From NCBI GenBank assembly GCA_002269645.1, contig NIVC01004748.1, forward strand, positions 1-36,246: a stretch of DNA of 36,246 bases. The letters run 5' to 3'. Below the pieces are notes generated by a model that saw only the letters and a list, made by a program, of their open reading frames with translations, was not told the DNA's origin and ran no database searches. This document shows positions 1-35,143 of this stretch, piece by piece. Source of the DNA: Macrostomum lignano (lineage: Eukaryota). The translations under genes were made by a program, and so were the position numbers. Numbering within the stretch: position 1 is the stretch's first letter; every line of letters begins with the position of its first letter.

Positions 1-296
1 GACTGGATATTGTTTGTCTCAAAGTTCAACAAGCTCAGAAAAGGTTCACACAAACTGCCAGAGAAATGAAACAGTTCACGAAATTTCTATAGCTCGTAGT
101 TTAAGCGTGCTCAACAATGATGCAGTCAAAGTTGGCGCTGAAAATGAAGCTTTTCTTTCGGGAAAAATCAGGGAAATTCGGAATACGTCAGTTGCTTTTG
201 TTTGTTTAACTGTTAAATGCAAAACGAATTTTTGCCCCAAAAACCATTCCTGGAAATCTATTTCTAAGAAAGCCGATTGCCAGTGCGTGATTCAAA

Positions 297-6845: not shown

Positions 6846-9800
6846 ATGGTTATCACTGGCTCTGAGATCAAGGCTGGCAGCCTCACATTTCTGTCCAACT
6901 TCGACTCTGGCAATCTCGCCCGGGTGGCCAAGCTCTCCTCCAGAGACGACTCAGATGAGCAGCAGGGCAGTTCGGCCTCATCTGCAGCTGCGCCGCCCCC
7001 GCCGCCGGCGCCAACCTCCCAAGCCGAGGCCAACCGGCCTGACTACGAGTACCAGGTGTGGACTCGCAAAGACGCCGAGGGCTTCCAGTTTGAGAACGAG
7101 AATCGCACCTGGTTTCACTTCGGCGTGCGCGGCTACCAGCCAAACAAGCTCATCAAGCTCACCGTGATGAACCTCAACCGGCAGCAGCGCCTCTTCCAGC
7201 AGGGCCACCAGCCGGTGTTTCGTGTCGGCTTCCCTGACGGCAGCTTCGCCAAGTGGCAGCGTGTCCGCGACCGCTGCTCCTGCGAGACAGTCGACGGCCA
7301 GTTCTACCTGACCTTCACGCACCGGTTCGGCGCCAACGCCAAGGGCTGCACAACTTACTTCGCGTTCTGCTATCCCTGGTCCTACACAGAGTCGCAGGAG
7401 CAGCTGTCCGCGCTGGACTATCGGTTGGTTTAGCAATGATTGCCGCCTTCCAAAGTGGGCTTTCCTTGGGCTACCCTGAGGGGGGGGGCGTAGTCCAGTG
7501 GTCTAGCGCAGCTCAATTCCGAGTGCAGTCACAGTAATTTGAGGCTAAATTGGAATCTCGGCTTGGCTCTGCTCGTGCAATTAACGCCATTGAGGGCCAA
7601 CCCCCAAGGCACAGTGAAGTGTACATGCCTAATGATAAATAAAGTTAGGGCCACTGTACACTCCTGTGTGAGTGTGTGCCTGCGCGTATGACTGCGTACG
7701 TATCCGCGCGCTTGTGTGCCTGCTCAGGGGAGTCGGCGGAATGGGGGCAGCAATGCCTCTCACCGGTTGTGCGACAATGTCGCTTAAAGTGCGCCAGGGT
7801 ACCTCTAATAAAAGAATGAGCTACTCTAGTAGCAAAATTATTGAATTTTTAGCCGATGGCCCAATTTCGAAGACCCCTGGGTTCGATTCCGTGAGTGCGG
7901 CCGTATTAATTTGGGGATGGTGTACGAAAACTTAACACCATAAAAAGCAGCCACGAGGGCCAACCCCAAAGGCACAGAGAGTGTACATGCCTGACGATTA
8001 GTATTGGCGCCTTTAAATAAGAATGTCGTCATGTTGACTATTTCCGAATTAATTTTTTTAGCCTTAATAAGTTCACGCTTGAAAACGTTCAATCTTACAA
8101 AAGTGCATCGAATACATCGCACATATCTTGCTCCCGCTAACTTATCTCGTTCTCAGCTTCCGCCACTGCGCCGCGATGAGGCCGGGCAAGGCTGGACCAG
8201 ACGAGATCTATTACCATAGGGAGCTGCTGTGCCACAGTCTGGACAGGCAGAGGGTGGACCTGCTCACCATCACCGACTGCCACGGCATGACTGACCAGGT
8301 CTGGCTTGCCTGTCTGGCAACTGCTTTTTGATCTCTGCATCCACTAACCATCTCTGCCTGCAGTCCCGATCCTTTAGTCCCGATCCTTCAGTCCCGATCC
8401 TTCAGTCCCGATCCTTCAGTCCCGATCCTGCGGTCCCGATCCTGCAGTCCCGATCCTGCAGTCCCGATCCTGCAGTCCCGATCCTGCAGTCCCGATCCTG
8501 CAGTCCCGATCCTGCAGTCCCGATCCTGCAGTCCCGATCCTGCAGTCCCGATCATTCAGTCCCGATCCTGCAGTCCCGATCCTTCAGTCCCGATCCTTCA
8601 GTCCCGATCCTGCAGTCCCGATCATTCAGTCCCGATCCTGCAGTCCCGATCCTGCAGTCCCGATCCTTCAGTCCCGATCCTTCAGTCCCGATCCTGCGGT
8701 CCCGATCCTGCAGTCCCGATCATTCAGTCCCGATCCTTCAGTCCCGATTCTTCAGTCCCGATCCTTCAGTCCCGATCCTGCAGTCCCGATCATTCAGTCC
8801 GGATCCTTCAGTCCCGATCCTTCAGTCCCGATCCTTCAGTCCCGATCCTGCAGTCCCAATCCTTCAGTCCCGATCCTTCAGTCCCGATCCTTCAGTCCCA
8901 ATCCTTCAGTCCCGATCCTTCAGTCCCGATTCTTCAGTCCCGATTCTGACGTCCCGATTCTGCAGTCCCGATCCTGCAGTCCCGATCCTTCAGTCCCGAT
9001 CCTTCAGTCCCGATCCTTCAGTCCCGATCCTGCAGTCCCGATCATTCAGTCCGGATCCTTCAGTCCCGATCCTTCAGTCCCGATCCTGCAGTCCCGATCC
9101 TGCAGTCCCGATCCTGCAGTCCCGATCCTGCAGTCCCGATCATTCAGTCCGGATCCTTCAGTCCCGATCCTTCAGTCCCGATCCTGCAGTCCCGATCCTT
9201 CAGTCCCGATCCTTCAGTCCCGATCCTGCAGTCCCGATCCTGCAGTCCCGATCCTGCAGTCCCGATCCTGCAGTCCCGATCCTGCAGTCCCGATCCTTCA
9301 GTCCCGATCCTTCAGTCCCGATCCTGCAGTCCCGATCATTCAGTCCGGATCCTTCAGTCCCGATCCTGCAGTCCCGATCCTGCAGTCCCGATCCTTCAGT
9401 CCCGATCCTTCAGTCCCGATCCTGCAGTCCCGATCATTCAGTCCGGATCCTTCAGTCCCGATCCTTCAGTCCCGATCCTGCAGTCCCGATCCTGCAGTCC
9501 CGATCCTTCAGTCCCAATCCTTCAGTCCCGATCCTTCAGTCCCGATCCTTCAGTCCCAATCCTTCAGTCCCGATCCTTCAGTCCCGATTCTTCAGTCCCG
9601 ATTCTTCAGACGACGTCCCGATTCTGCAGTCCCGATCCTGCAGTCCCGATCCTTCAGTCCCAATCCTTCAGTCCCGATCCTTCAGTCCCGATTCTTCAGT
9701 CCCGATTCTGACGTCCCGATTCTGCAGTCCCGATCCTGCAGTCCCGATCCTTCAGTCCCAATCCTTCAGTCCCGATCCTTCAGTCCCGATTCTGCAGTCC

Positions 9801-16696: not shown

Positions 16697-19600
16697 TCAG
16701 CGGCGGTAGCCGGCGTCGCGGCGGAGTCGTCGGCGTCCTGGCGCCGGCCTGCCGACCGGCCAGCGGCCAGCCGTTGACGCTGCCGTTGAGACTGTCTGAT
16801 TCCTCCTCGCTGATGGTGTCGAACCGGCCATGCTGCCGCCCTCCTGCTGCTGCTGCTGCTGGTCTTCGCCGCCGGGGAATCGGCCGTAGCGCCGGCTCTG
16901 CATCGACCGCTTGCTGCCGCGGCGCCGCAGCTTGGCTGGGAAGAGTCGCCATGGTGAGTTTTTTTCAACCGACGGGTAATTCATCCCGCACGAGAGCGCA
17001 CACCTGCACAAATACTTTGGCCAGTGCTCCTAAGCTGCACGTTCCGTAAGCTGCGTTTCCTAAGCTGCATGTTCCCTAAGCTTCATGTTCCCTAAGCTGC
17101 ATGTTCCCTAAGCTACATGTTCCCTAAGCTGCATGTTCCCTAAGCTGCATGTTCCCTAAGCTGCATGTTCCCTAAGCTGCATGTTCCCTAAGCTGCATGT
17201 TCCCTAAGCTGCATGTTCCCTAAGCTGCATGTTCCTAAGCTGCATGTTCCTAAGCTGCATGTTCCTAAGCTGCATGTTCCTAAGCTGCATGTTCCTAAGC
17301 TGCATGTTCCTAAGCTGCATGTTCCCTAAGCTACATACATGTTTCCTGAGCTTTATAAGCTTCATGTTGACTGAGATACATTTCCTAAAGTGGCTTTTTG
17401 GTACTAGTGGAATCAAGTCTTACTTTGCACGTGACTGATGTTCCCGGCTTCCCAGCGCCTTACTGTGCTGCATATGCCGTTGGTTCGATCTCCAACAATT
17501 CGTGTCATCTCGTTCTTTGTCGTCCGACTTCTGACGGACCATCAAGTAGCGCTTGATAAGGTCGCGCATCACCGACTGAGGGTTGGGTTAGGATTTCCGT
17601 TTAGTTTTAATGTGGGACGACATCAACAAGCAAACAGGCTTCTTCACCTGGTACCGAGCCTCCTTCTCGTTTACTTTCTTCACCACTTTCTGCAACAGGA
17701 GAGATAAGCCGCTTCTCAATTGCAAACATGATGCAAAATTCACTTAGATAAAATCTTGCAGTCTTACCCGGATGCTCTGCCACTTGCTGCGCTGGTGCCG
17801 CTTAGAGCAGGAGCAGACCTTATCCTTGAGCCAGGCCATCGCGTACAGGAAAGACTTCGGGCTCGGGATGATGTTGAATGGCGTCGGCAGGGTGCCGCCT
17901 TCGTCAAAGTAGCTGATCCACAGCTTGCCGCGGGCGAACTTCCACTCCGTGTCTGCCTGGGCCTGCAGATGTGAAAAATCTGTTTTTTATTTTCTATCGC
18001 CGCTCTACTTTGAGTAGCAGGCACTGAATATTAGAAACGTACCACAATCTCTTCAAAGCTGCAGTTCATCATGGCAATCAACATGTTGAGCAGGACGATG
18101 AATGTTATTGCAGAGAAGGCGCCGTACATGAGCTTGCCTGCGGGAGAGTGACGGCTGAGACTGGCTCTCGGGCTGCTGGGAGAGTGACGGCTGAGACTGC
18201 TTCTCGGCTTGGAGAGTGATGGGTGAGACTGACTCTCGGACTGTGAGAGTGACGGGTGAGACTGACTCTCGGACTGTGAGAGTGACGGTGAGACTGACTC
18301 TCGGGCTGGAGAGTGACGGCTGAGACTGACTCTCGGACTGTGAGAGTGACGGGTGAGACTGACTCTCGGGCTGGGAGAGTGACGGCTGAGACTGACTCTC
18401 GGACTGTGAGAGTGACGGCTGAGACTGACTCTCGGACTGTGAGAGTGACGGGTGAGACTGACTCTCGGACTGTGAGAGTGACGGGTGAGACTGACTCTCG
18501 GACTGTGAGAGTGACGGGTGAGACTGACTCTCGGACTGTGAGAGTGACGGGTGAGACTGACTCTCGGACTGTGAGAGTGACGGGTGAGACTGACTCTCGG
18601 ACTGTGAGAGTGACGGGTGAGACTGACTCTCGGACTGTGAGAGTGACGGCTGAGACTGACTCTCGGACTGTGAGAGTGACGGGTGAGACTGACTCTCGGA
18701 CTGTGAGAGTGACGGGTGAGACTGACTCTCGGACTGTGAGAGTGACGGGTGAGACTGACTCTCGGACTGTGAGAGTGACGGGTGAGACTGACTCTCGGAC
18801 TGTGAGAGTGACGGGTGAGACTGACTCTCGGACTGTGAGAGTGACGGGTGAGACTGACTCTCGGACTGTGAGAGTGACGGGTGAGACTGACTCTCGGGCT
18901 GGGAGAGTGACGGCTGAGACTGACTCTCGGACTGTGAGAGTGACGGGTGAGACTGACTCTCGGACTGTGAGAGTGACGGGTGAGACTGACTCTCGGGCTG
19001 GAGAGTGACGGCTGAGACTGACTCTCGGACTGTGAGAGTGACGGGTGAGACTGACTCTCGGACTGTGAGAGTGACGGGTGAGACTGACTCTCGGACTGTG
19101 AGAGTGACGGGTGAGACTGACTCTCGGACTGTGAGTGAGAGTAAACAATTAAAATATATTCATTTACGCGTCAGAAGATATTTTTAATGGATTTTACCTA
19201 ACTACTTTCCCCCTGAAACGTTATTAATTAATTATGGTGCCAGATGCGAAAATGAAAGTGATAGGAGGCTCTCAACGTTGTCAAATGATGATAAATCAAC
19301 CAGTCCATTAAATAGCCGACCATTACCAATGAATTCCGTGAACGAGTGCTCGTACTCGAGGTCGGTGTTGCTCAAATCTATCAGGCCGTAGGCTGACCAG
19401 TAGAGGGACTGGGTGATCTCAAACAGACTGTGGGGTTTGCAGGTTGCCATTGGTTATCGAGTAAAACGACATAATGGAAAATGTAGGCGGATCTCTGCAG
19501 TACTCAGAGTGCTACAGTTTTATTGTCGTTTGCGCTTCAAACCTACTTGCACTTTACGGTAGAATTCATATGAGATTATATTGGCAGCCTCTGACTTTCT

Positions 19601-22600: not shown

Positions 22601-25600
22601 AAGCAGCTATCGGGTGAGATGTGCATGCACGCACGCGGAACTGAGAGTCGAGTTCCAGTTTCAATATTTGTTTGATTTTGACGAATCGAAGTGAGAGGCG
22701 AAGAATCGGCCATCCAGTATTTAGTTTGACAGCTCCGCCATTCACAATAAAAGTGCACAAGTACTTAATCTCCTCACCTGGACGAAATAAGAGCGTAGGA
22801 TAAAAGCTGCTGCTGAAAGCTTTACTTCTGTAAGCATAGGAACATAACTTAATGCAGATGGCGAATATGCTGGTACCTCCAGCAACGACTATGAGATTGT
22901 CTCCCAATTACCTAATCCGTGATTAATTGCGCTATGGACAGCTAGTCCGCGCCCACGCATGGGCCACTTTTGCTCTGCAAGGAAATTTCTCACTCAGTGA
23001 CAGCAAGGCTTACTGTTGCTTCTCCCAGCCAAAAACCTGGAAACTGACCCGCTCCTGACAACCCGAGATAGCTCGCATTCTCCTTTGGCTTCTTGTTTTA
23101 TAGGCATCAACTGACGAAAACTTGCGACAATTTGCCCAGAGTTATCTTAAATCGATCCACAAAAAACTTTTCCTTGCATAAATAATGTTAGCAAAAATAA
23201 AGCTGCATGTTCCCTAAACTGCATGTTCCCTAAGCTGCATGTTCTCTAAGCTGCATGTTCCCTAAGCTACATGTTCTCTAAGCTGCATGTTCCGTAAGCT
23301 ACATGTTCCCTAAGCTGCATTTTCCCTAAGCTACATGTTCCCTAAGCTACATGTTCCCTAAGCTACATGTTCTCTAAGCTAAATGTTCCGTAAGCTACAT
23401 GTTCCCTAAGCTGCATGTTCCTTAAGCTACATGTTCCCTAAGCTGCATGTTCCCTAAGCTACATGTTCTCTAAGCTAAATTTTCCCTAAGCTGCATGTTC
23501 CCTAAGCTACATGTTCCCTAAGCTACATGTTATCTAAGCTAAATTTTCCCTAAGCTGCATGTTCCCTAAGCTACATGTTCTCTAAGCTACATGTTCCCTA
23601 AGCTGCATGTTCCCTAAGCTACATGTTCTCTAAGCTAAATGTTCCGTAAGCTACATGTTCCCTAAGCTACATGTTCTCTAAGCTGCATGTTCCGTAAGCT
23701 ACATGTTCCGTAAGCTACATGTTCCCTAAGCTACATGTTCTCTAAGCTGCATGTTCCCTAAGCTACATGTTCTCTAAGCTAAATTTTCCCTAAGCTGCAT
23801 GTTCTCTAAGCTAAATGTTCCGTAAGCTACATGTTCCCTAAGCTACATGTTCTCAAAACTACATGTTCCCTAAGCTGCAAGTTTCCCAAGCTGCATGTTT
23901 CCTAAGCTACATGTTCCGTAAGCTACATGTTCCCTAAGCTACATGTTCCCTAAGCTGCATGTTCCCTAAGCTACATGTTCCGTAAGCTACATGTTCTCTA
24001 AGCTATATGTTCCCTAAGCTACATGTTCCCTAAGCTACATGTTTCCTAAGTTACATGCTTCCAAAGCTGCATGCTCCCGGATTTCCTGAGCAGAGGCACT
24101 CACCCTATAATAAGATACTCCTCGCAGTGTGATGGTGGCCACGTACAGAGCATTGGTGATGAAATCCAGCAGGTTCCACATATCAGTCACGTACGCTTTG
24201 ATGCCCTCGCCCCAGAGCTGTTTGATCTCCTGCCAGACAAAGCCTGTGGGTGGCAATTAGCAGAGTTTGATAAGAAAATTTCTGATAGATAAATACAGTA
24301 GGTAGACAGGTGAGAGTGTGGAGAGGTGAGAGAGTAGGCGGAGATGAGTAGACAGGTAAGAGAGTAGACAGGGGAGACAGTAAACAGGTGAGAGTAGATA
24401 GGTGAGAGAATATACAGGTGCATGTGGGCGTTTAAATGATTAGGCATGTATATAAAATCAATGAATGGTAGTAATTCGTAGATGATCAATTGTTAAAGTC
24501 TGGTATTAGGTTGTAAATCACCGCTACATAGCAACCATCATAGCGTGTTACGATTTAGCAGTTAGGAGAGAAGCAATAAAACGATGGCATTTGCTTGCCG
24601 CAACTACGGGAAGCCAAAGGTAGATTATCTTTGAGGCAGGGGCCTCACAGCCGGATATGGGGGAAAGCGAGGCAGTTGGGGGGGGAAATGGGAATTGGAA
24701 TTCGATTCAAATCTGCCACGCCCAGACATGAATGCCAAATTGGGGCCAGCTAGCTCGGGGAGAACCGAGCTTCAATTTAATCCCCCCTCTTTCTCCATCT
24801 GTCTGCCTCAATAGAAGGGAGCGAGAGAGGTGGACAAAAGCGATGTAAGAAAGGAGAGGGAATCTGGGTGTGGTTTTTATGCTTGCCAGCCGGTTTCCCC
24901 GGACGGGCTGGGCGGCCAAAAGAAGCTGCTGAATGCATGCTCGATAGGTTTAATTATCCCTCATTTACTGCCAATGCAATATTGAGTGGCCCTGCCCGGT
25001 TCACCTAATTCCAAGGACTGCTAGATAGCAATCGGTACTAGTGTAGTCCTTGGCCCAGCACGCGATGGATCAAGGCTTATCTACCGATTAAATTACCATC
25101 AGTGCGTTCTATTCTTTCAGAACTACTCTCTACTGTTGTCAGAAAACGTTGTTACAGTCTGCCCCCTTTCCCGGTGTATTTTTATCCTTCATTTAAAACC
25201 CTCCAAAGAATCTGTTTGATTTTTTAACATTCGAAAGTCGCCCCAATTTAAAGTTGCATAATGTAATCTAACCTGTAACACATGTTTATCACTAACTAGC
25301 GTATTAGCCCACATACTAATGTACTCAATTCTTCTTTCGTTATTATTGACAATATTTCTATTGAAATTATGACGCAGACGTGGGCGTTGGCCGCTCCTGC
25401 TTGCTTGGCTAGCAAAGTCCATTCGTAGAGACAAGAGAAAGCTTGGCGTATGGCTTGGCTCGACCACGCCCAACGCTTGTTTGATTGGATTTGCCCCACT
25501 GCTGGATTTTGGATGCATGGACTGAGGGTATAAACTTTTCAAGACTGTCACCATGGGCGACTGAACAGCCGTACGCAGCCTTCAGATGCGCCGCGCAATA

Positions 25601-28600
25601 GCTGCGGCTGAGCTGTCGGTTGCACATCTAGCCATTAGTGCAGGTTTAATCAATTATTTTTATTTATTAAGATCGTCCCACCGCTTTGCTATGACAAGGA
25701 CATAGATCACAATGGTCCATTCCACCATATCTAGATGGCATGGCACAGAGCATCTCACCTAGGACATAGATCACAATGGTCTATTCCACCATATCTAGAT
25801 GGCATGGCACAGAGCATCTCACCTAGGACATAGATCACAATGGTCCATTCCACCATATCTAGATGGCATGGCACAGAGCATCTCACCTAGGACATAGATC
25901 ACAATGGTCTATTCCACCATATCTAGATGGCATGGCACAGAGCATCTCACCTAGGACATAGATCACAATGGTCTATTCCACCATATCTAGATGGCATGGC
26001 ACAGAGCATCTCACCTAGGACATAGATCACAATGGTCCATTCCACCATATCTAGATGGCATGGCACAGAGCATCTCACCTAGGACATAGATCACAATGGT
26101 CTATTCCACCATATCTAGATGGCATGGCACAGAGCATCTCACCTAGGACATAGATCACAATGGTCCATTCCACCATATCTAGATGGCATGGCACAGAGCA
26201 TCTCACCTAGGACATAGATCACAATGGTCCATTCCACCATATCTAGATGGCATGGCACAGAGCATCTCACCTAGGACATAGATCACAATGGTCCATTCCA
26301 CCATATCTAGATGGCATGGCACAGAGCATCTCACCTAGGACATAGATCACAATGGTCCATTCCACCATATCTAGATGGCATGGCACAGAGCATCTCACCT
26401 AGGGCATAGATCACAATGGTCCATTCCACCATATCTAGATGGCATGGCACAGAGCATCTCACCTAGGACATAGATCACAATGGTCCATTCCACCATATCT
26501 AGATGGCATGGCACAGAGCATCTCACCTAGGACATAGATCACAATGGTCCATTCCACCATATCTAGATGGCATGGCACAGAGCATCTCACCTAGGACATA
26601 GATCACAATGGTCCATTCCACCATATCTAGATGGCATGGCACAGAGCATCTCACCTAGGGCATAGATCACAATGGTCCATTCCACCATATCTAGATGGCA
26701 TGGCACAGAGCATCTCACCTAGGACATAGATCACAATGGTCCATTCCACCATATCTAGATGGCATGGCACAGAGCATCTCACCTAGGGCATAGATCACAA
26801 TGGTCCATTCCACCATATCTAGATGGCATGGCACAGAGCATCTCACCTAGGACATAGATCACAATGGTCCATTCCACCATATCTAGATGGCATGGCACAG
26901 AGCATCTCACCTAGGACATAGATCACAATGGTCTATTCCACCATATCTAGATGGCATGGCACAGAGCATCTCACCTAGGACATAGATCACAATGGTCCAT
27001 TCCACCATATCTAGATGGCATGGCACAGAGCATCTCACCTAGGACATAGATCACAATGGTCCATTCCACCATATCTAGATGGCATGGCACAGAGCATCTC
27101 ACCTAGGGCATAGATCACAATGGTCCATTCCACCATATCTAGATGGCATGGCACAGAGCATCTCACCTAGGACATAGATCACAATGGTCTATTCCACCAT
27201 ATCTAGATGGCATGGCACAGAGCATCTCACCTAGGGCATAGATCACAATGGTCCATTCCACCATATCTAGATGGCATGGCACAGAGCATCTCACCTAGGA
27301 CATAGATCACAATGGTCCATTCCACCATATCTAGATGGCATGGCACAGAGCATCTCACCTAGGACATAGATCACAATGGTCCATTCCACCATATCTAGAT
27401 GGCATGGCACAGAGCATCTCACCTAGGACATAGATCACAATGGTCCATTCCACCATATCTAGATGGCATGGCACAGAGCATCTCACCTAGGACATAGATC
27501 ACAATGGTCTATTCCACTATATCTAGATGGCATGGCACAGAGCATCTCACCTAGGACATAGATCACAATGGTCCATTCCACCATATCTAGATGGCATGGC
27601 ACAGAGCATCTCACCTAGGACATAGATCACAATGGTCCATTCCACCATATCTAGATGGCATGGCACAGAGCATCTCACCTAGGGCATAGATCACAATGGT
27701 CCATTCCACCATATCTAGATGGCATGGCACAGAGCATCTCACCTAGGACATAGATCACAATGGTCCATTCCACCATATCTAGATGGCATGGCACAGAGCA
27801 TCTCACCTAGGGCATAGATCACAATGGTCCATTCCACCATATCTAGATGGCATGGCACAGAGCATCTCACCTAGGACATAGATCACAATGGTCCATTCCA
27901 CCATATCTAGATGGCATGGCACAGAGCATCTCACCTAGGGCATAGATCACAATGGTCCATTCCACCATATCTAGATGGCATGGCACAGAGCATCTCACCT
28001 AGGACATAGATCACAATGGTCCATTCCACCATATCTAGATGGCATGGCACAGAGCATCTCACCTAGGGCATAGATCACAATGGTCCATTCCACCATATCT
28101 AGATGGCATGGCACAGAGCATCTCACCTAGGACATAGATCACAATGGTCCATTCCACCATATCTAGATGGCATGGCACAGAGCATCTCACCTAGGACATA
28201 GATCTCAATGGTCCATTCCACCATATCTAGATGGCATGGCACAGAGCATCTCACCTAGGACATAGATCACAATGGTCCATTCCACCATATCTAGATGGCA
28301 TGGCACAGAGCATCTCACCTAGGACATAGATCACAATGGTCCATTCCACCATATCTAGATGGCATGGCACAGAGCATCTCACCTAGGATATAGATCACAA
28401 TGATCCATTCTACAATGCTCGGCGCACCGCCTCTCTCCTGCATTTTCTCCTCCAGGGTGTCCATGATGAGATCTTCAACCCGGATGGCAGCCAGCACCAG
28501 AAAGCCGAGGAATAACATGTAGGAGGCGCTGTGGCAGATAAATTTAATAAACGGCTTTCGCATCTTCTGTCCCAGTTCCGATCGAGGCGCCACCAGGTAG

Positions 28601-31600
28601 ACCATTGACAGCAGCGGGAAAATCCCGGCAAAGGTGCCAATCATGCCCATTTGAAAGAACATGTGCTTCCGACGGAAACCGGGTAGGCCTTCGTACCAGA
28701 GTGCGGCTAGCAACTGCTGACAGTGCGGATGGGCCACAAACTGAGGGGTGCAATTAAAAAAGCACTTGGATAATTCTTTCTGCTATGAAGTTTCATCTAT
28801 ACGCTCAACTGAGCTTGATTCCAACAAAGACTGCGTAAAGACCAGAGACAGAAACGGGACGGAACGGGACGGAACGGGACGGAACGGGACGGAACGGGAC
28901 GGAACGGGACGGAACGGGACGGAACGGGACGGAACGGGACGGAACGGGACGGAACGGGACGGAACGGGACGGAACGGGACGGAACGGGACGGAACGGGAC
29001 GGAACGGGACGGAACGGGACGGAACGGGACGGAACGGGACGGAACGGGACGGAACGGGACGGAACGGGACGGAACGGGACGGAACGGGACGGAACGGGAC
29101 GGAACGGGACGGAACGGGACGGAACGGGACGGAACGGGACGGAACGGGACGGAACGGGACGGAACGGGACGGAACGGGACGGAACGGGACGGAACGGGAC
29201 GGAACGGGACGGAACGGGACGGAACGGGACGGAACGGGACGGAACGGGACGGAACGGGACGGAACGGGACGGAACGGGACGGAACGGGACGGAACGGGAC
29301 GGAACGGGACGGAACGGGACGGAACGGGACGGAACGGGACGGAACGGGACGGAACGGGACGGAACGGGACGGAACGGGACGGAACGGGACGGAACGGGAC
29401 GGAACGGGACGGAACGGGACGGAACGGGACGGAACGGGACGGAACGGGACGGAACGGGACGGAACGGGACGGAACGGGACGGAACGGGACGGAACGGGAC
29501 GGAACGGGACGGAACGGGACGGAACGGGACGGAACGGGACGGAACGGGACGGAACGGGACGGAACGGGACGGAACGGGACGGAACGGGACGGAACGGGAC
29601 GGAACGGGACGGAACGGGACGGAACGGGACGGAACGGGACGGAACGGGACGGAACGGGACGGAACGGGACGGAACGGGACGGAACGGGACGGAACGGGAC
29701 GGAACGGGACGGAACGGGACGGAACGGGACGGAACGGGACGGAACGGGACGGAACGGGACGGAACGGGACGGAACGGGACGGAACGGGACGGAACGGGAC
29801 GGAACGGGACGGAACGGGACGGAACGGGACGGAACGGGACGGAACGGGACGGAACGGGACGGAACGGGACGGAACGGGACGGAACGGGACGGAACGGGAC
29901 GGAACGGGACGGAACGGGACGGAACGGGACGGAACGGGACGGAACGGGACGGAACGGGACGGAACGGGACGGAACGGGACGGAACGGGACGGAACGGGAC
30001 GGAACGGGACGGAACGGGACGGAACGGGACGGAACGGGACGGAACGGGACGGAACGGGACGGAACGGGACGGAACGGGACGGAACGGGACGGAACGGGAC
30101 GGAACGGGACGGAACGGGACGGAACGGGACGGAACGGGACGGAACGGGACGGAACGGGACGGAACGGGACGGAACGGGACGGAACGGGACGGAACGGGAC
30201 GGAACGGGACGGAACGGGACGGAACGGGACGGAACGGGACGGAACGGGACGGAACGGGACGGAACGGGACGGAACGGGACGGAACGGGACGGAACGGGAC
30301 GGAACGGGACGGAACGGGACGGAACGGGACGGAACGGGACGGAACGGGACGGAACGGGACGGAACGGGACGGAACGGGACGGAACGGGACGGAACGGGAC
30401 GGAACGGGACGGAACGGGACGGAACGGGACGGAACGGGACGGAACGGGACGGAACGGGACGGAACGGGACGGAACGGGACGGAACGGGACGGAACGGGAC
30501 GGAACGGGACGGAACGGGACGGAACGGGACGGAACGGGACGGAACGGGACGGAACGGGACAGCGTCGAACTAACCTTCTTCTGCTTGTACTTGATGGCCA
30601 TCTTGAGTCGGGACAAGTTCATCCTCTCACCCTCCGTAAGGGTTTTGTCGTTGAGCTTTGCGTTGCCCTGTCCGGCGTCCTGGTTAAGCACGATGGCCAG
30701 CTCCTCGGAACTGCGAGTCTGCTCCAGCAGAGCCGTGGCAAACTTCTGACAATCGGCCGACAGGTTCTCGTACTCCTCGCGGAACTCGTGCTCGAGCCGG
30801 CCGAGTCGGTGCATCTCCCAGCTGAGCTCGAAGGCTGTCAGAATCGGATCCTTGCTAGACAGGGCAATCAGCGACGGGCTGGCCAGGGCTTTGTAGGCGT
30901 TGATGCGCGATTTCGAGTGCTGCAGACTGTCCTCCTTGTGCGCCCTGACGCAGTCGACGCAAGCGCAGCGCAGTTCGTGCGGCTTGGGTACGCGGTCGCC
31001 GCGATCCAGCAGCAGCTTGATGATCTCGTAGTTATCGATCTGGGCGGCCAGGATGATCGGCGTGACGTCCGGCGTGAAACTGCTGGACGGTGTTGTGCCG
31101 AGGAGGCCCTGCGGTTAGAGGATCGGAGGCTGTTGGTGGTTTCATGGACAGGTCAACTGAATTAAAAGACGCTAGCTCGCAGATATTGTGAATTTTGCTG
31201 TAGGCCGATTTTCACGGTGAAATGCATCAACTTAAAAATATATAAAATAATAATTGATTATAACTGCCCTAATGGTCAGATTTGTAACCGACAGCTCAGC
31301 CGCAGCTATTGCGCGGCGCATCTGAAGGCTGCGTACGGCTGTTCAGTCCAAGGACTAGGGGGGGGGGGGGGGGCGGCGTCGCCACACACACCCTCAGTTA
31401 CCCCAGCTAATGCTGGCACCCATTTTACAGCTGGGTGAAGTGAAGCAATGCAGAGTTAAGTGCCGTGATCAAGGACACAAATTGCTCCTGGTGAGTCGAG
31501 AATCGAACCCCGACCTTTCAGTCGTGAGTCCGACGCTCTAACCACCAGGCTACAACCCCATATCTTAAGATAAGATGATTGAAGATTTTTAGCACTAAAC

Positions 31601-34786: not shown

Positions 34787-35143
34787 GGGGGGGGCTAAGC
34801 TCAGTGGTCTAGCGCGGCGCTTTGATGTGCCAGCGGCCCAGGCTCGATTCCAAGTGCAGTCACATTAATTTGGGACTAAATTGGAATCTCGGCTTGGAAT
34901 TGTTCATGCTACAATTAATGCTCTCAAGAGCTAACCCCAAGGCACAGTGAAGTGTACATGCCTAACGATAAATAAAGTTAGGGCCGCTGTACACTCCTGT
35001 GTGAATGTGTGCCTGTGCGTATGACTGCGTACGTATCCGCACGCTTGTGTGCCTGCTCAGGGGAGTCGGCGGAATGGGCAGTAATGCCTCTCGCCGGTTG
35101 TGTGACAATGTCGCTTAAAGTGCTCCAATGTGAACACAGCCCC
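34787..35143 (+). mobile_element. tRNA-derived SINE (family A), most complete copy
   Basis: A-box AGCTCAGTGGTCTAG and B-box-like GGCTCGATTCC, then a body colinear with 7480-7795 and 2683-2940. Confidence 0.8.

Follow-up and report, generated by a model that had tools for sequence, protein, structure and literature searches.

A minisatellite spanning an exon-intron junction repeats the 5′ splice site of a TRPC-like channel gene in Macrostomum lignano

Contig NIVC01004748.1 of the Macrostomum lignano genome assembly Mlig_3_7 (GCA_002269645.1) was analyzed over 36,246 nucleotides of its forward strand (positions 1 to 36,246; hereafter the window). On the minus strand it carries a gene for a predicted channel of the TRPC subfamily, in which a 64-bp minisatellite spans the junction between exon 3 and intron 3. 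As the monomer includes this exon/intron junction, the donor TAG/GTGAGA (the slash marks the splice junction) recurs 41 more times within intron 3. The array is confined to this locus, its copy number differs among the copies of the gene, all donors other than the first lead to a premature stop, and every gene model uses the first. The array is probably a hypervariable intronic minisatellite, neutral or nearly so, with donor 1 being used and the remaining array being removed as intron.

Tandem Repeats Finder placed the minisatellite at 25697-28410 of the minus strand, with a period of 64, 42.4 copies, 98 % matches and 0 % indels. Each 64-bp unit consists of nucleotides 1-33 of intron 3 and a 31-nt copy of the 3′ end of exon 3. 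The motif AGGTGAGATGCTCTG was counted 42 times on the minus strand with all intervals being exactly 64, and TAG/GTGAGATGCTCTG was likewise present in 42 copies with a 64-nt period. Along the minus strand, the exon sequence ...GTAGAATGGATCATTGTGATCTATATCCTAG leads into GTGAGATGCTCTGTGCCATGCCATCTAGATATG and then into a near-copy of the exon end, after which the pattern recurs. The exon 3/intron 3 boundary was set by protein homology and the deposited gene models. The array extends to 28410, which is 28 nt inside exon 3, and the first monomer thereby crosses the exon-intron boundary. Since the final unit of the array ends with CCTTG, the donors number 42 and there is no 43rd. An earlier note on this stretch had described the unit as being composed of 33 nt from intron 3 of a TRPC gene and 31 nt from the end of its exon 3, which was borne out by the repeat alignment as well as by Pfam and PDB comparisons. 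Its count of 41 extra donors at exact 64-nt spacing and without indels behind the donor at 28382, with exon 4 at 24243, agreed with the motif count and with Tandem Repeats Finder.

Compared with the real exon end, the majority unit carries changes in 3 of 31 nt. One difference is silent (GTA to GTG), whereas the other two would exchange isoleucine for threonine (ATC to ACC) and isoleucine for valine (ATC to GTC); these are the three sites that had already been noticed. The 42 units comprise 24 of type A, nine of type B (GCC), six of type C (TAG in the exon-like part) and one each of types D, E and F. The donor 9-mer TAG/GTGAGA is unaffected by the differences between unit types, and the sequence from +7 to +33 is also common to all 42 donors. 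The array copies are free of coding constraint: TAG or TGA variants occur in some units, and in-frame stops in some copies. It had been proposed that the array was either homogenized separately or preserves an older allele. The first proposal was supported, while the evidence for the second was mixed: the copies match the paralogs at the I/V site (YV[LM]G), but at the I/T site it is the real exon that does so (EWIIV). These mixed paralog matches, together with the in-frame stops in some copies, make separate homogenization within the array the better description.

A 128-nt array probe searched against the 764-Mb genome gave matches on the four contigs with this gene and nowhere else. The unit is thus confined to the TRPC locus, and an origin from a dispersed satellite or transposon was rejected. 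No open frame of at least 50 amino acids (aa) was found in the array on either strand, which disposed of a coding repeat or an opposite-strand gene. Moreover, the whole window matched no Rfam family, and a structured RNA was therefore discarded as well.

The product of the minus-strand gene displayed Ank, TRP_2 (3.9e-28) and Ion_trans domains in Pfam. Its closest solved relatives in PDB are Drosophila TRPgamma (3e-127) and TRPC4/TRPC5 (approx. 1e-112 to 1e-114), and the nearest proteins are from Macrostomum lignano. Ankyrin repeats, the TRP_2 domain, the six-helix ion-transport domain and the TRP box (EWKFAR), the features of TRPC membership, are all present. Judged by these similarities, the host gene belongs to the TRPC subfamily and is predicted to encode a TRPgamma/TRPC4/5-like channel. 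The GenBank models at the locus are PAA46675.1 (BOX15_Mlig003128g1, on the window contig), PAA52666.1, PAA48426.1 and PAA76641.1, and the sister models on the three other contigs, with lengths of 170,429, 57,664 and 370,780 bp, are Mlig029366g1, g2 and g3.

Donor 1 is joined to exon 4 in all four of the four GenBank models, including that of the window contig. The same join was found in P0002, an older, independent prediction based on ML2. With this join, the S1 helix sequence that is conserved in TRPC4/TRPgamma is restored; the alignment to TRPgamma and TRPC4 is gap-free over the join, which sits in this transmembrane helix. According to PMC5730564, the genes of Mlig_3_7 were annotated on the basis of a transcriptome assembled under guidance of the genome, with StringTie/TACO being applied to RNA-seq and a de novo transcriptome being mapped by BLAT in addition. 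Since the donor-1 models rest on transcript assemblies, they provide indirect RNA evidence for donor 1. Among transcript-derived partial proteins, no M. lignano fragments were retrieved with the exon 3-5 peptide from a collection of 5.8 billion proteins, and a full-text literature search with the gene IDs gave no match.

Use of donor 2 adds 64 nt and shifts the reading frame, which leads to a stop 58 nt into exon 4. With donors 3 and later, a TGA is met 65 nt past the end of exon 3. All non-first donors thus result in a premature stop located upstream of many exon junctions. The earlier statement that extension to a downstream donor meets a TGA in unit 2 therefore holds for donors 3 and later. 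It does not hold for donor 2, since the TGA overlaps this donor (AG/GTGA) and the stop arises via the frameshift in exon 4. A 36-nt in-frame cassette (ATATGG...CCTAG, 12 codons) generated via an internal TCTAG/A is formally possible; it was dismissed as unsupported and would disrupt helix S1.

TAG/GUGAGA can form six Watson-Crick and two wobble pairs with the 5′ end of the genome's own U1 RNA, AUACUUACCUG. Judged against the other mapped donors of the gene, TAG/GTGAGA is among the stronger ones. Masking of the pseudo-donors by RNA structure was rejected, as the predicted fold of a 192-nt stretch of the array is no more stable than those of shuffled sequences (z = -0.81). Local folding does not single out donor 1 either: its unpaired probability is 0.003 compared with a mean of 0.0005, and all donors, the first included, are predicted to be mostly paired. 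The U1 small nuclear RNA genes of M. lignano (n = 27) with the canonical 5′ end AUACUUACCUG are located on contigs C1212-C1214, C3672, C3830, C4525 and C4853; on several of these contigs they are clustered at distances of approx. 11.3-11.5 kb.

Mlig_3_7 is a Canu assembly of PacBio reads from the inbred DV1 line (PMC5730564). M. lignano is a recent polyploid with the subgenomes S, L1 and L2, which are approx. 2 % SNPs (single nucleotide polymorphisms) apart and differ mainly by indels (PMC10733133). In this assembly, copies of the locus are present on contigs C4748 (the window), C3203, C4152 and C807. C4748 and C3203 harbor 42 donors each, C4152 harbors nine and C807 two; the corresponding versions are referred to as H42, H9 and H2. 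The C3203 array is identical to the window array unit for unit, including the order of the units, and comparison of the two contigs over 18.7 kb revealed 0 mismatches and 22 one-base indels. The identity of the arrays and the absence of mismatches over this distance indicate that one haplotype was assembled twice. H42 and H9 have an identical terminal unit and array-specific variants in common, and the terminal unit of H2 is a variant that also ends with CCTTG. Intron 3 has a length of 4139 nt in H42, 2029 nt in H9 and approx. 1574 nt in H2, and the difference in unit number accounts for these length differences to within approx. 5 nt. In the unique intron flank (1.4 kb beyond the array) H42 and H9 are 0.29 % divergent, and each differs from H2 by approx. 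1 % (up to 1.07 %). In exon 3 the versions are distinguished by SNPs at 28738 and 28720 (T in H42 alone), at 28576 and 28540 (H9) and at 28596 (H2). As the flank divergence is only 0.3-1.1 % despite a 5- to 20-fold change in length, the array evolves very fast. The locus copies fit the three subgenomes of a neopolyploid, and the three versions would then represent L1, L2 and S. This reading is supported by the other TRPC paralogs of the genome, because each of them sits on exactly three contigs.

The two models from the 42-donor haplotype lack 3′ sequence, with lengths of 784 aa (PAA52666.1) and 904 aa (PAA46675.1) compared with 1073 aa. Their shortening was traced to the assembly, in which there are indels of 1 nt and a switch of haplotype, rather than to the array. 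Pseudogene decay of the 42-donor copy was rejected on the same grounds, as the lesions are not common to both assemblies of the haplotype. The 22 single-base indels between C3203 and the window resemble residual long-read consensus errors rather than biology, and one of them probably frameshifts PAA52666.1. Within the window, identity to C3203 extends down to 17517, where approx. 140 bp are lost; below this position the identity drops to 95 % with C3203 and is higher, at 97 %, with C4152. The region 17419-17517 is an apparent haplotype switch or chimeric join that cuts the exon for residues 826-858 and explains the length of PAA46675.1.

Minisatellites that repeat a donor are known from human genes, and the arrangement was already described in at least five of them between 1995 and 2006. 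Intron 7 of F7 contains a 37-bp minisatellite, the first monomer of which lies over the exon 7 boundary, with five to nine identical donors (Borensztajn et al. 2006, PMC1557585). Splicing of F7 is restricted to the functional donor that lies furthest upstream; the pseudo-sites are activated one by one as upstream sites are mutated, fail to compete even when raised to 91 % consensus, and deletion of monomers leaves the splicing pattern unaffected (PMC1557585). The minisatellite in intron 2 of IFI6 (6-16) comprises the authentic donor and 25 pseudo-sites, and the 31-bp variable number tandem repeat in intron 13 of CBS has 15-20 repeats; in both cases the first three sites are used (PMC1557585, citing Turri 1995, Yang 2000 and Lievers 2001 for IFI6/CBS). 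In LMNB2 (100 bp, 10-15 copies) and in intron 4 of PDGF (81 bp, 16-18 copies), splicing occurs at the authentic donor only (PMC1557585).

The M. lignano array exhibits four features that define this class: head-to-tail monomers in the size range of approx. 10-100 bp, a first monomer that crosses the junction, a donor that recurs unchanged, and a copy number that varies. It belongs to the F7/CBS/IFI6/LMNB2/PDGF class, with exclusive use of the upstream donor being supported indirectly by the gene models. The novelty claim of the earlier note, which was made for TRP genes, holds in that narrow sense only, the arrangement itself being known from human genes (PMC1557585). The array is the first case that we can document in a TRP gene or a flatworm, and it has more donors than any case in PMC1557585. 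As in F7, an authentic donor over which the first monomer lies is followed by identical pseudo-donors in variable copy number, and the most upstream donor would be the productive one. However, F7 has five to nine monomers of 37 bp (4 nt exon and 33 nt intron) compared with 42 of 64 bp (31 and 33 nt) in M. lignano, and the F7 donor is weak (TGG/gtgggt), whereas that of M. lignano is strong. Silence of the pseudo-sites was established by experiment in F7 and would follow by inference in M. lignano. IFI6 and CBS resemble the array in repeating the donor many times (25 pseudo-sites and 15-20 repeats, respectively). Their first two pseudo-sites are constitutively used beside the authentic donor, whereas such isoforms are undocumented in M. 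lignano and use of a pseudo-donor leads to a premature stop. LMNB2 and PDGF share long monomers that repeat the exon/intron junction, but these are vertebrate arrays with fewer copies and without a known series of copy numbers among homeologs. Recursive splice sites (ratchet points) of Drosophila and vertebrates, in which a pyrimidine tract-AG abuts GTRAGT so that a donor is regenerated, are single, conserved and located in very long introns. Each pseudo-donor of M. lignano is formally a juxtaposed 3′/5′ site of this kind (YAG/GTGAGA): AG/GTGAGA occurs in every unit, where it is preceded by a mixed tract ending with TAG. In contrast to recursive sites, these sites are reiterated, vary between 2, 9 and 42 among homeologs and reside in an intron of 1.6-4.1 kb.

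A genome search with the exon 3 peptide uncovered a TRPC paralog (approx. 42 % identical) with a donor-repeating array of its own at the homologous boundary of exon 3 and intron 3; the paralog is represented on C1402 (region 56283-56636), C868 (311649-312002) and C1360 (26978-27331). The paralog unit of 32-34 bp consists of GTGAGT and 26-28 nt of its own exon end, and is present in approx. 9 (C1402), 5 (C868) and 19 or more copies (C1360). In two of the three homeologs the array makes up most of a short intron, which ends with ...CCCGCAG/GCTTTGTCTGGGCC, the latter being the start of exon 4. Since the two TRPC arrays have no sequence in common, they have separate origins. No junction-spanning repeat was detected within the first 100 nt past the homologous donor in four of the five other TRPC paralogs.

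According to the genome paper, 15 % of the M. lignano genome consists of simple and tandem repeats and 180 Mb lie in duplicated blocks (PMC5730564). Tandem arrays account for 31 % of the window in 14 separate blocks, and for 93 % of intron 2, 68 % of intron 3, 64 % of intron 4 and 84 % of intron 6. In a genome this rich in arrays it is not surprising that one was seeded across a junction. A crude motif count for three AGGTRAGT motifs spaced 20-50 nt apart yielded 11,460 occurrences genome-wide compared with 6,009 for a reversed control. In four distinct AGGTRAGT arrays that were sampled, no clear exon ran into the first motif, and the excess accordingly gives no support to arrays that span a junction. 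That M. lignano introns commonly grow by repeating their own 5′ junction, through junction-aimed or splicing-coupled duplication, or that the copy numbers 2, 9 and 42 serve to separate homeolog expression, is conceivable but doubtful.

The array probably originated when a 64-bp segment over the exon 3/intron 3 junction was duplicated in tandem, with unequal exchange or slippage thereafter. It would be young, hypervariable and intronic. Productive splicing would proceed via the authentic, most upstream donor, and the whole array would be excised as an ordinary intron. The pseudo-donors would be silent or used at a low level, with any use giving a transcript with a premature stop, and copy number would drift, having reached 42, 9 and 2 in the three homeologous versions of one inbred line.

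As an alternative to strict use of the authentic donor, the earlier note had suggested an expression dial. Some transcripts would use pseudo-donors, gain a premature stop and undergo nonsense-mediated decay; with more copies, more of the splicing would be unproductive, so that copy number would set the dosage of the channel and might make the three homeologs differ in expression. We consider this unlikely, although several observations would suit it: the 42 donors are alike in the 9-mer and from +7 to +33, each non-first donor leads to a premature stop upstream of many exon junctions, and copy numbers of 2, 9 and 42 coexist among homeologs in one nucleus. By the title of a 2001 paper by Lievers and colleagues, the CBS repeat is reportedly linked to reduced CBS activity. 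The second and third sites are used in IFI6 and CBS (PMC1557585), and PMC10078293 reportedly links the length of tandem repeats to variation in splicing genome-wide in humans. However, the pseudo-donors of M. lignano are without transcript evidence, and all gene models take donor 1. Removal of monomers left F7 splicing unchanged, and F7 pseudo-sites at 91 % consensus still did not compete (PMC1557585). Moreover, the leaky human cases use only the first two pseudo-sites, so that nine and 42 copies would behave alike. A 21-fold range of copy number at 0.3-1.1 % flank divergence, the array-rich genome and the independent array of the paralog all point to drift. A regulatory element is not conserved at this position, given 2-42 copies among near-identical homeologs and the lack of a junction repeat in the first 100 nt of four of five other TRPC paralogs. 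The gene models, the join in helix S1 and the F7 precedent favor strict use of the authentic donor over a dial. The spread of copy number at low flank divergence, the array content of 31 % and the paralog array are better fitted by a drifting minisatellite than by a tuned element. Most likely, copy number is neutral or nearly neutral for channel expression, and we infer that the pseudo-donors are silent.

Several points weigh against such a silent, neutral array. The gene models cannot exclude low-level use of pseudo-donors or minor isoforms; nor can they assign junction reads to a homeolog, and thus to the 42-donor copy. IFI6 and CBS do use second and third sites (PMC1557585), and the scanning rule comes from mammalian cells, not from flatworms. 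Finally, the models on the 42-donor haplotype are those with a shortened 3′ part (784 and 904 compared with 1073 aa), though this was traced to the assembly.

Exon 3 has AG as its last two bases; each 64-nt unit therefore begins with GT and closes with YAG, which turns each pseudo-donor into a juxtaposed AG/GT site. Units of the form GTGAGATG...TGTCCTAG might erase themselves, either by stepwise removal of the array or by repair of downstream-donor transcripts through splicing of donor 1 to the AG that ends the retained units. Both routes would yield the correct mRNA. Splicing of donor 1 to the AG at the end of any unit would re-create exon 3 with GTGAGA behind it. Furthermore, the gene has an intron of 80 nt, showing that short introns are spliced in M. 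lignano. Such a mechanism is nevertheless very unlikely. It is purely formal; the 64-nt unit is shorter than the shortest intron seen in the gene; and it ends with TAG behind a mixed tract, whereas all seven of the seven acceptors mapped in the gene are CAG behind C-rich tracts. The paralog tolerates 5 to 19 or more copies of a unit that ends with CG instead of AG, and a unit-terminal AG is thus not required for tolerance. It is also very unlikely that PacBio/Canu assembly of a repeat-rich polyploid genome produced the 42-copy array or its exact length. Chimeric scaffolds do make up 36 % of the assembly length (PMC10733133), the window contig switches haplotype and loses approx. 140 bp at 17517-17419, and 22 single-base indels over 18.7 kb separate the two assemblies of one haplotype. 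In contrast, the same order of 42 units was obtained on two contigs, the nine- and two-donor versions have the same architecture with a terminal unit ending in CCTTG, and the number of 64-nt units predicts the differences in intron length to within approx. 5 nt. An array of 2.7 kb should also fit inside single long reads.

How the spliceosome chooses among identical donors is still debated, with linear 5′-to-3′ scanning, proximity to the acceptor and exon definition being considered. The 42 strong identical donors exceed the human cases in PMC1557585, the maximum of which is 26 in IFI6. The homeologs provide a natural series of 2, 9 and 42 identical donors within one nucleus, in a flatworm amenable to stable transgenesis and RNA interference. 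Should the first-donor rule apply, a scanning-type rule would extend from mammalian cells to a lophotrochozoan; should it fail, the three homeologs would show a dosage that depends on copy number. In addition, annotations of the M. lignano genome call for caution, as arrays abutting exons yield read-through and shortened models. The coordinates of the features are compiled in Table 1.

Table 1. Features of the exon 3/intron 3 region in window coordinates.
Feature	Position	Strand	Remarks
Exon 3 of the predicted TRPgamma/TRPC4/5-like gene BOX15_Mlig003128g1	28383..28740	-	358 nt, phase 1 end, starts FVAHPHCQQ; gap-free alignment to TRPgamma (9vqq) and TRPC4 (5z96)
Exon part of the first monomer	last 28-31 nt of exon 3	-	repeat alignment
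Authentic 5′ splice site TAG/GTGAGA	28377..28385, first intron base 28382	-	donor of all deposited gene models
64-bp minisatellite, 42.4 copies	25697..28410	-	41 pseudo-donors, first intron bases 28382-64n (n = 1..41): 28318 down to 25758
Terminal unit F	25697..25757	-	ends CCTTG, not CCTAG; followed by only approx. 0.4 further copy
Unique 3′ part of intron 3	24244..25696	-	holds a 16-bp array at 24302-24420; acceptor ...CCACCCACAG/G
Exon 4	24104..24243	-	first base 24243; then donor AGG/GTGAGT
Neighboring unrelated array (AACGGGACGG) x 171	28853..30560	-	93 % of intron 2, starts approx. 15 nt after the exon 2 donor

Several arrays of the window begin within approx. 25 nt of an exon edge. On C4152, intron 2 has a length of only 394 nt, and the (AACGGGACGG) array is absent or much shorter there. 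The older ML2-era prediction P0002 reads through the intron 2 array as 10-residue repeats. An inverted repeat of approx. 110 nt (91 % identical, with a 65-nt core containing 1 mismatch) is formed by 25559-25668 in intron 3, just past the array, and 31237-31348 near the 3′ end of intron 1. In the pre-mRNA its arms would be complementary, flanking exons 2-3 together with the array. All three haplotypes have the intron 3 arm. Furthermore, near-identical minus-strand peptides are encoded at approx. 34962-35114, 7632-7820 and 2588-2839, representing a dispersed repeat with three copies in the window.

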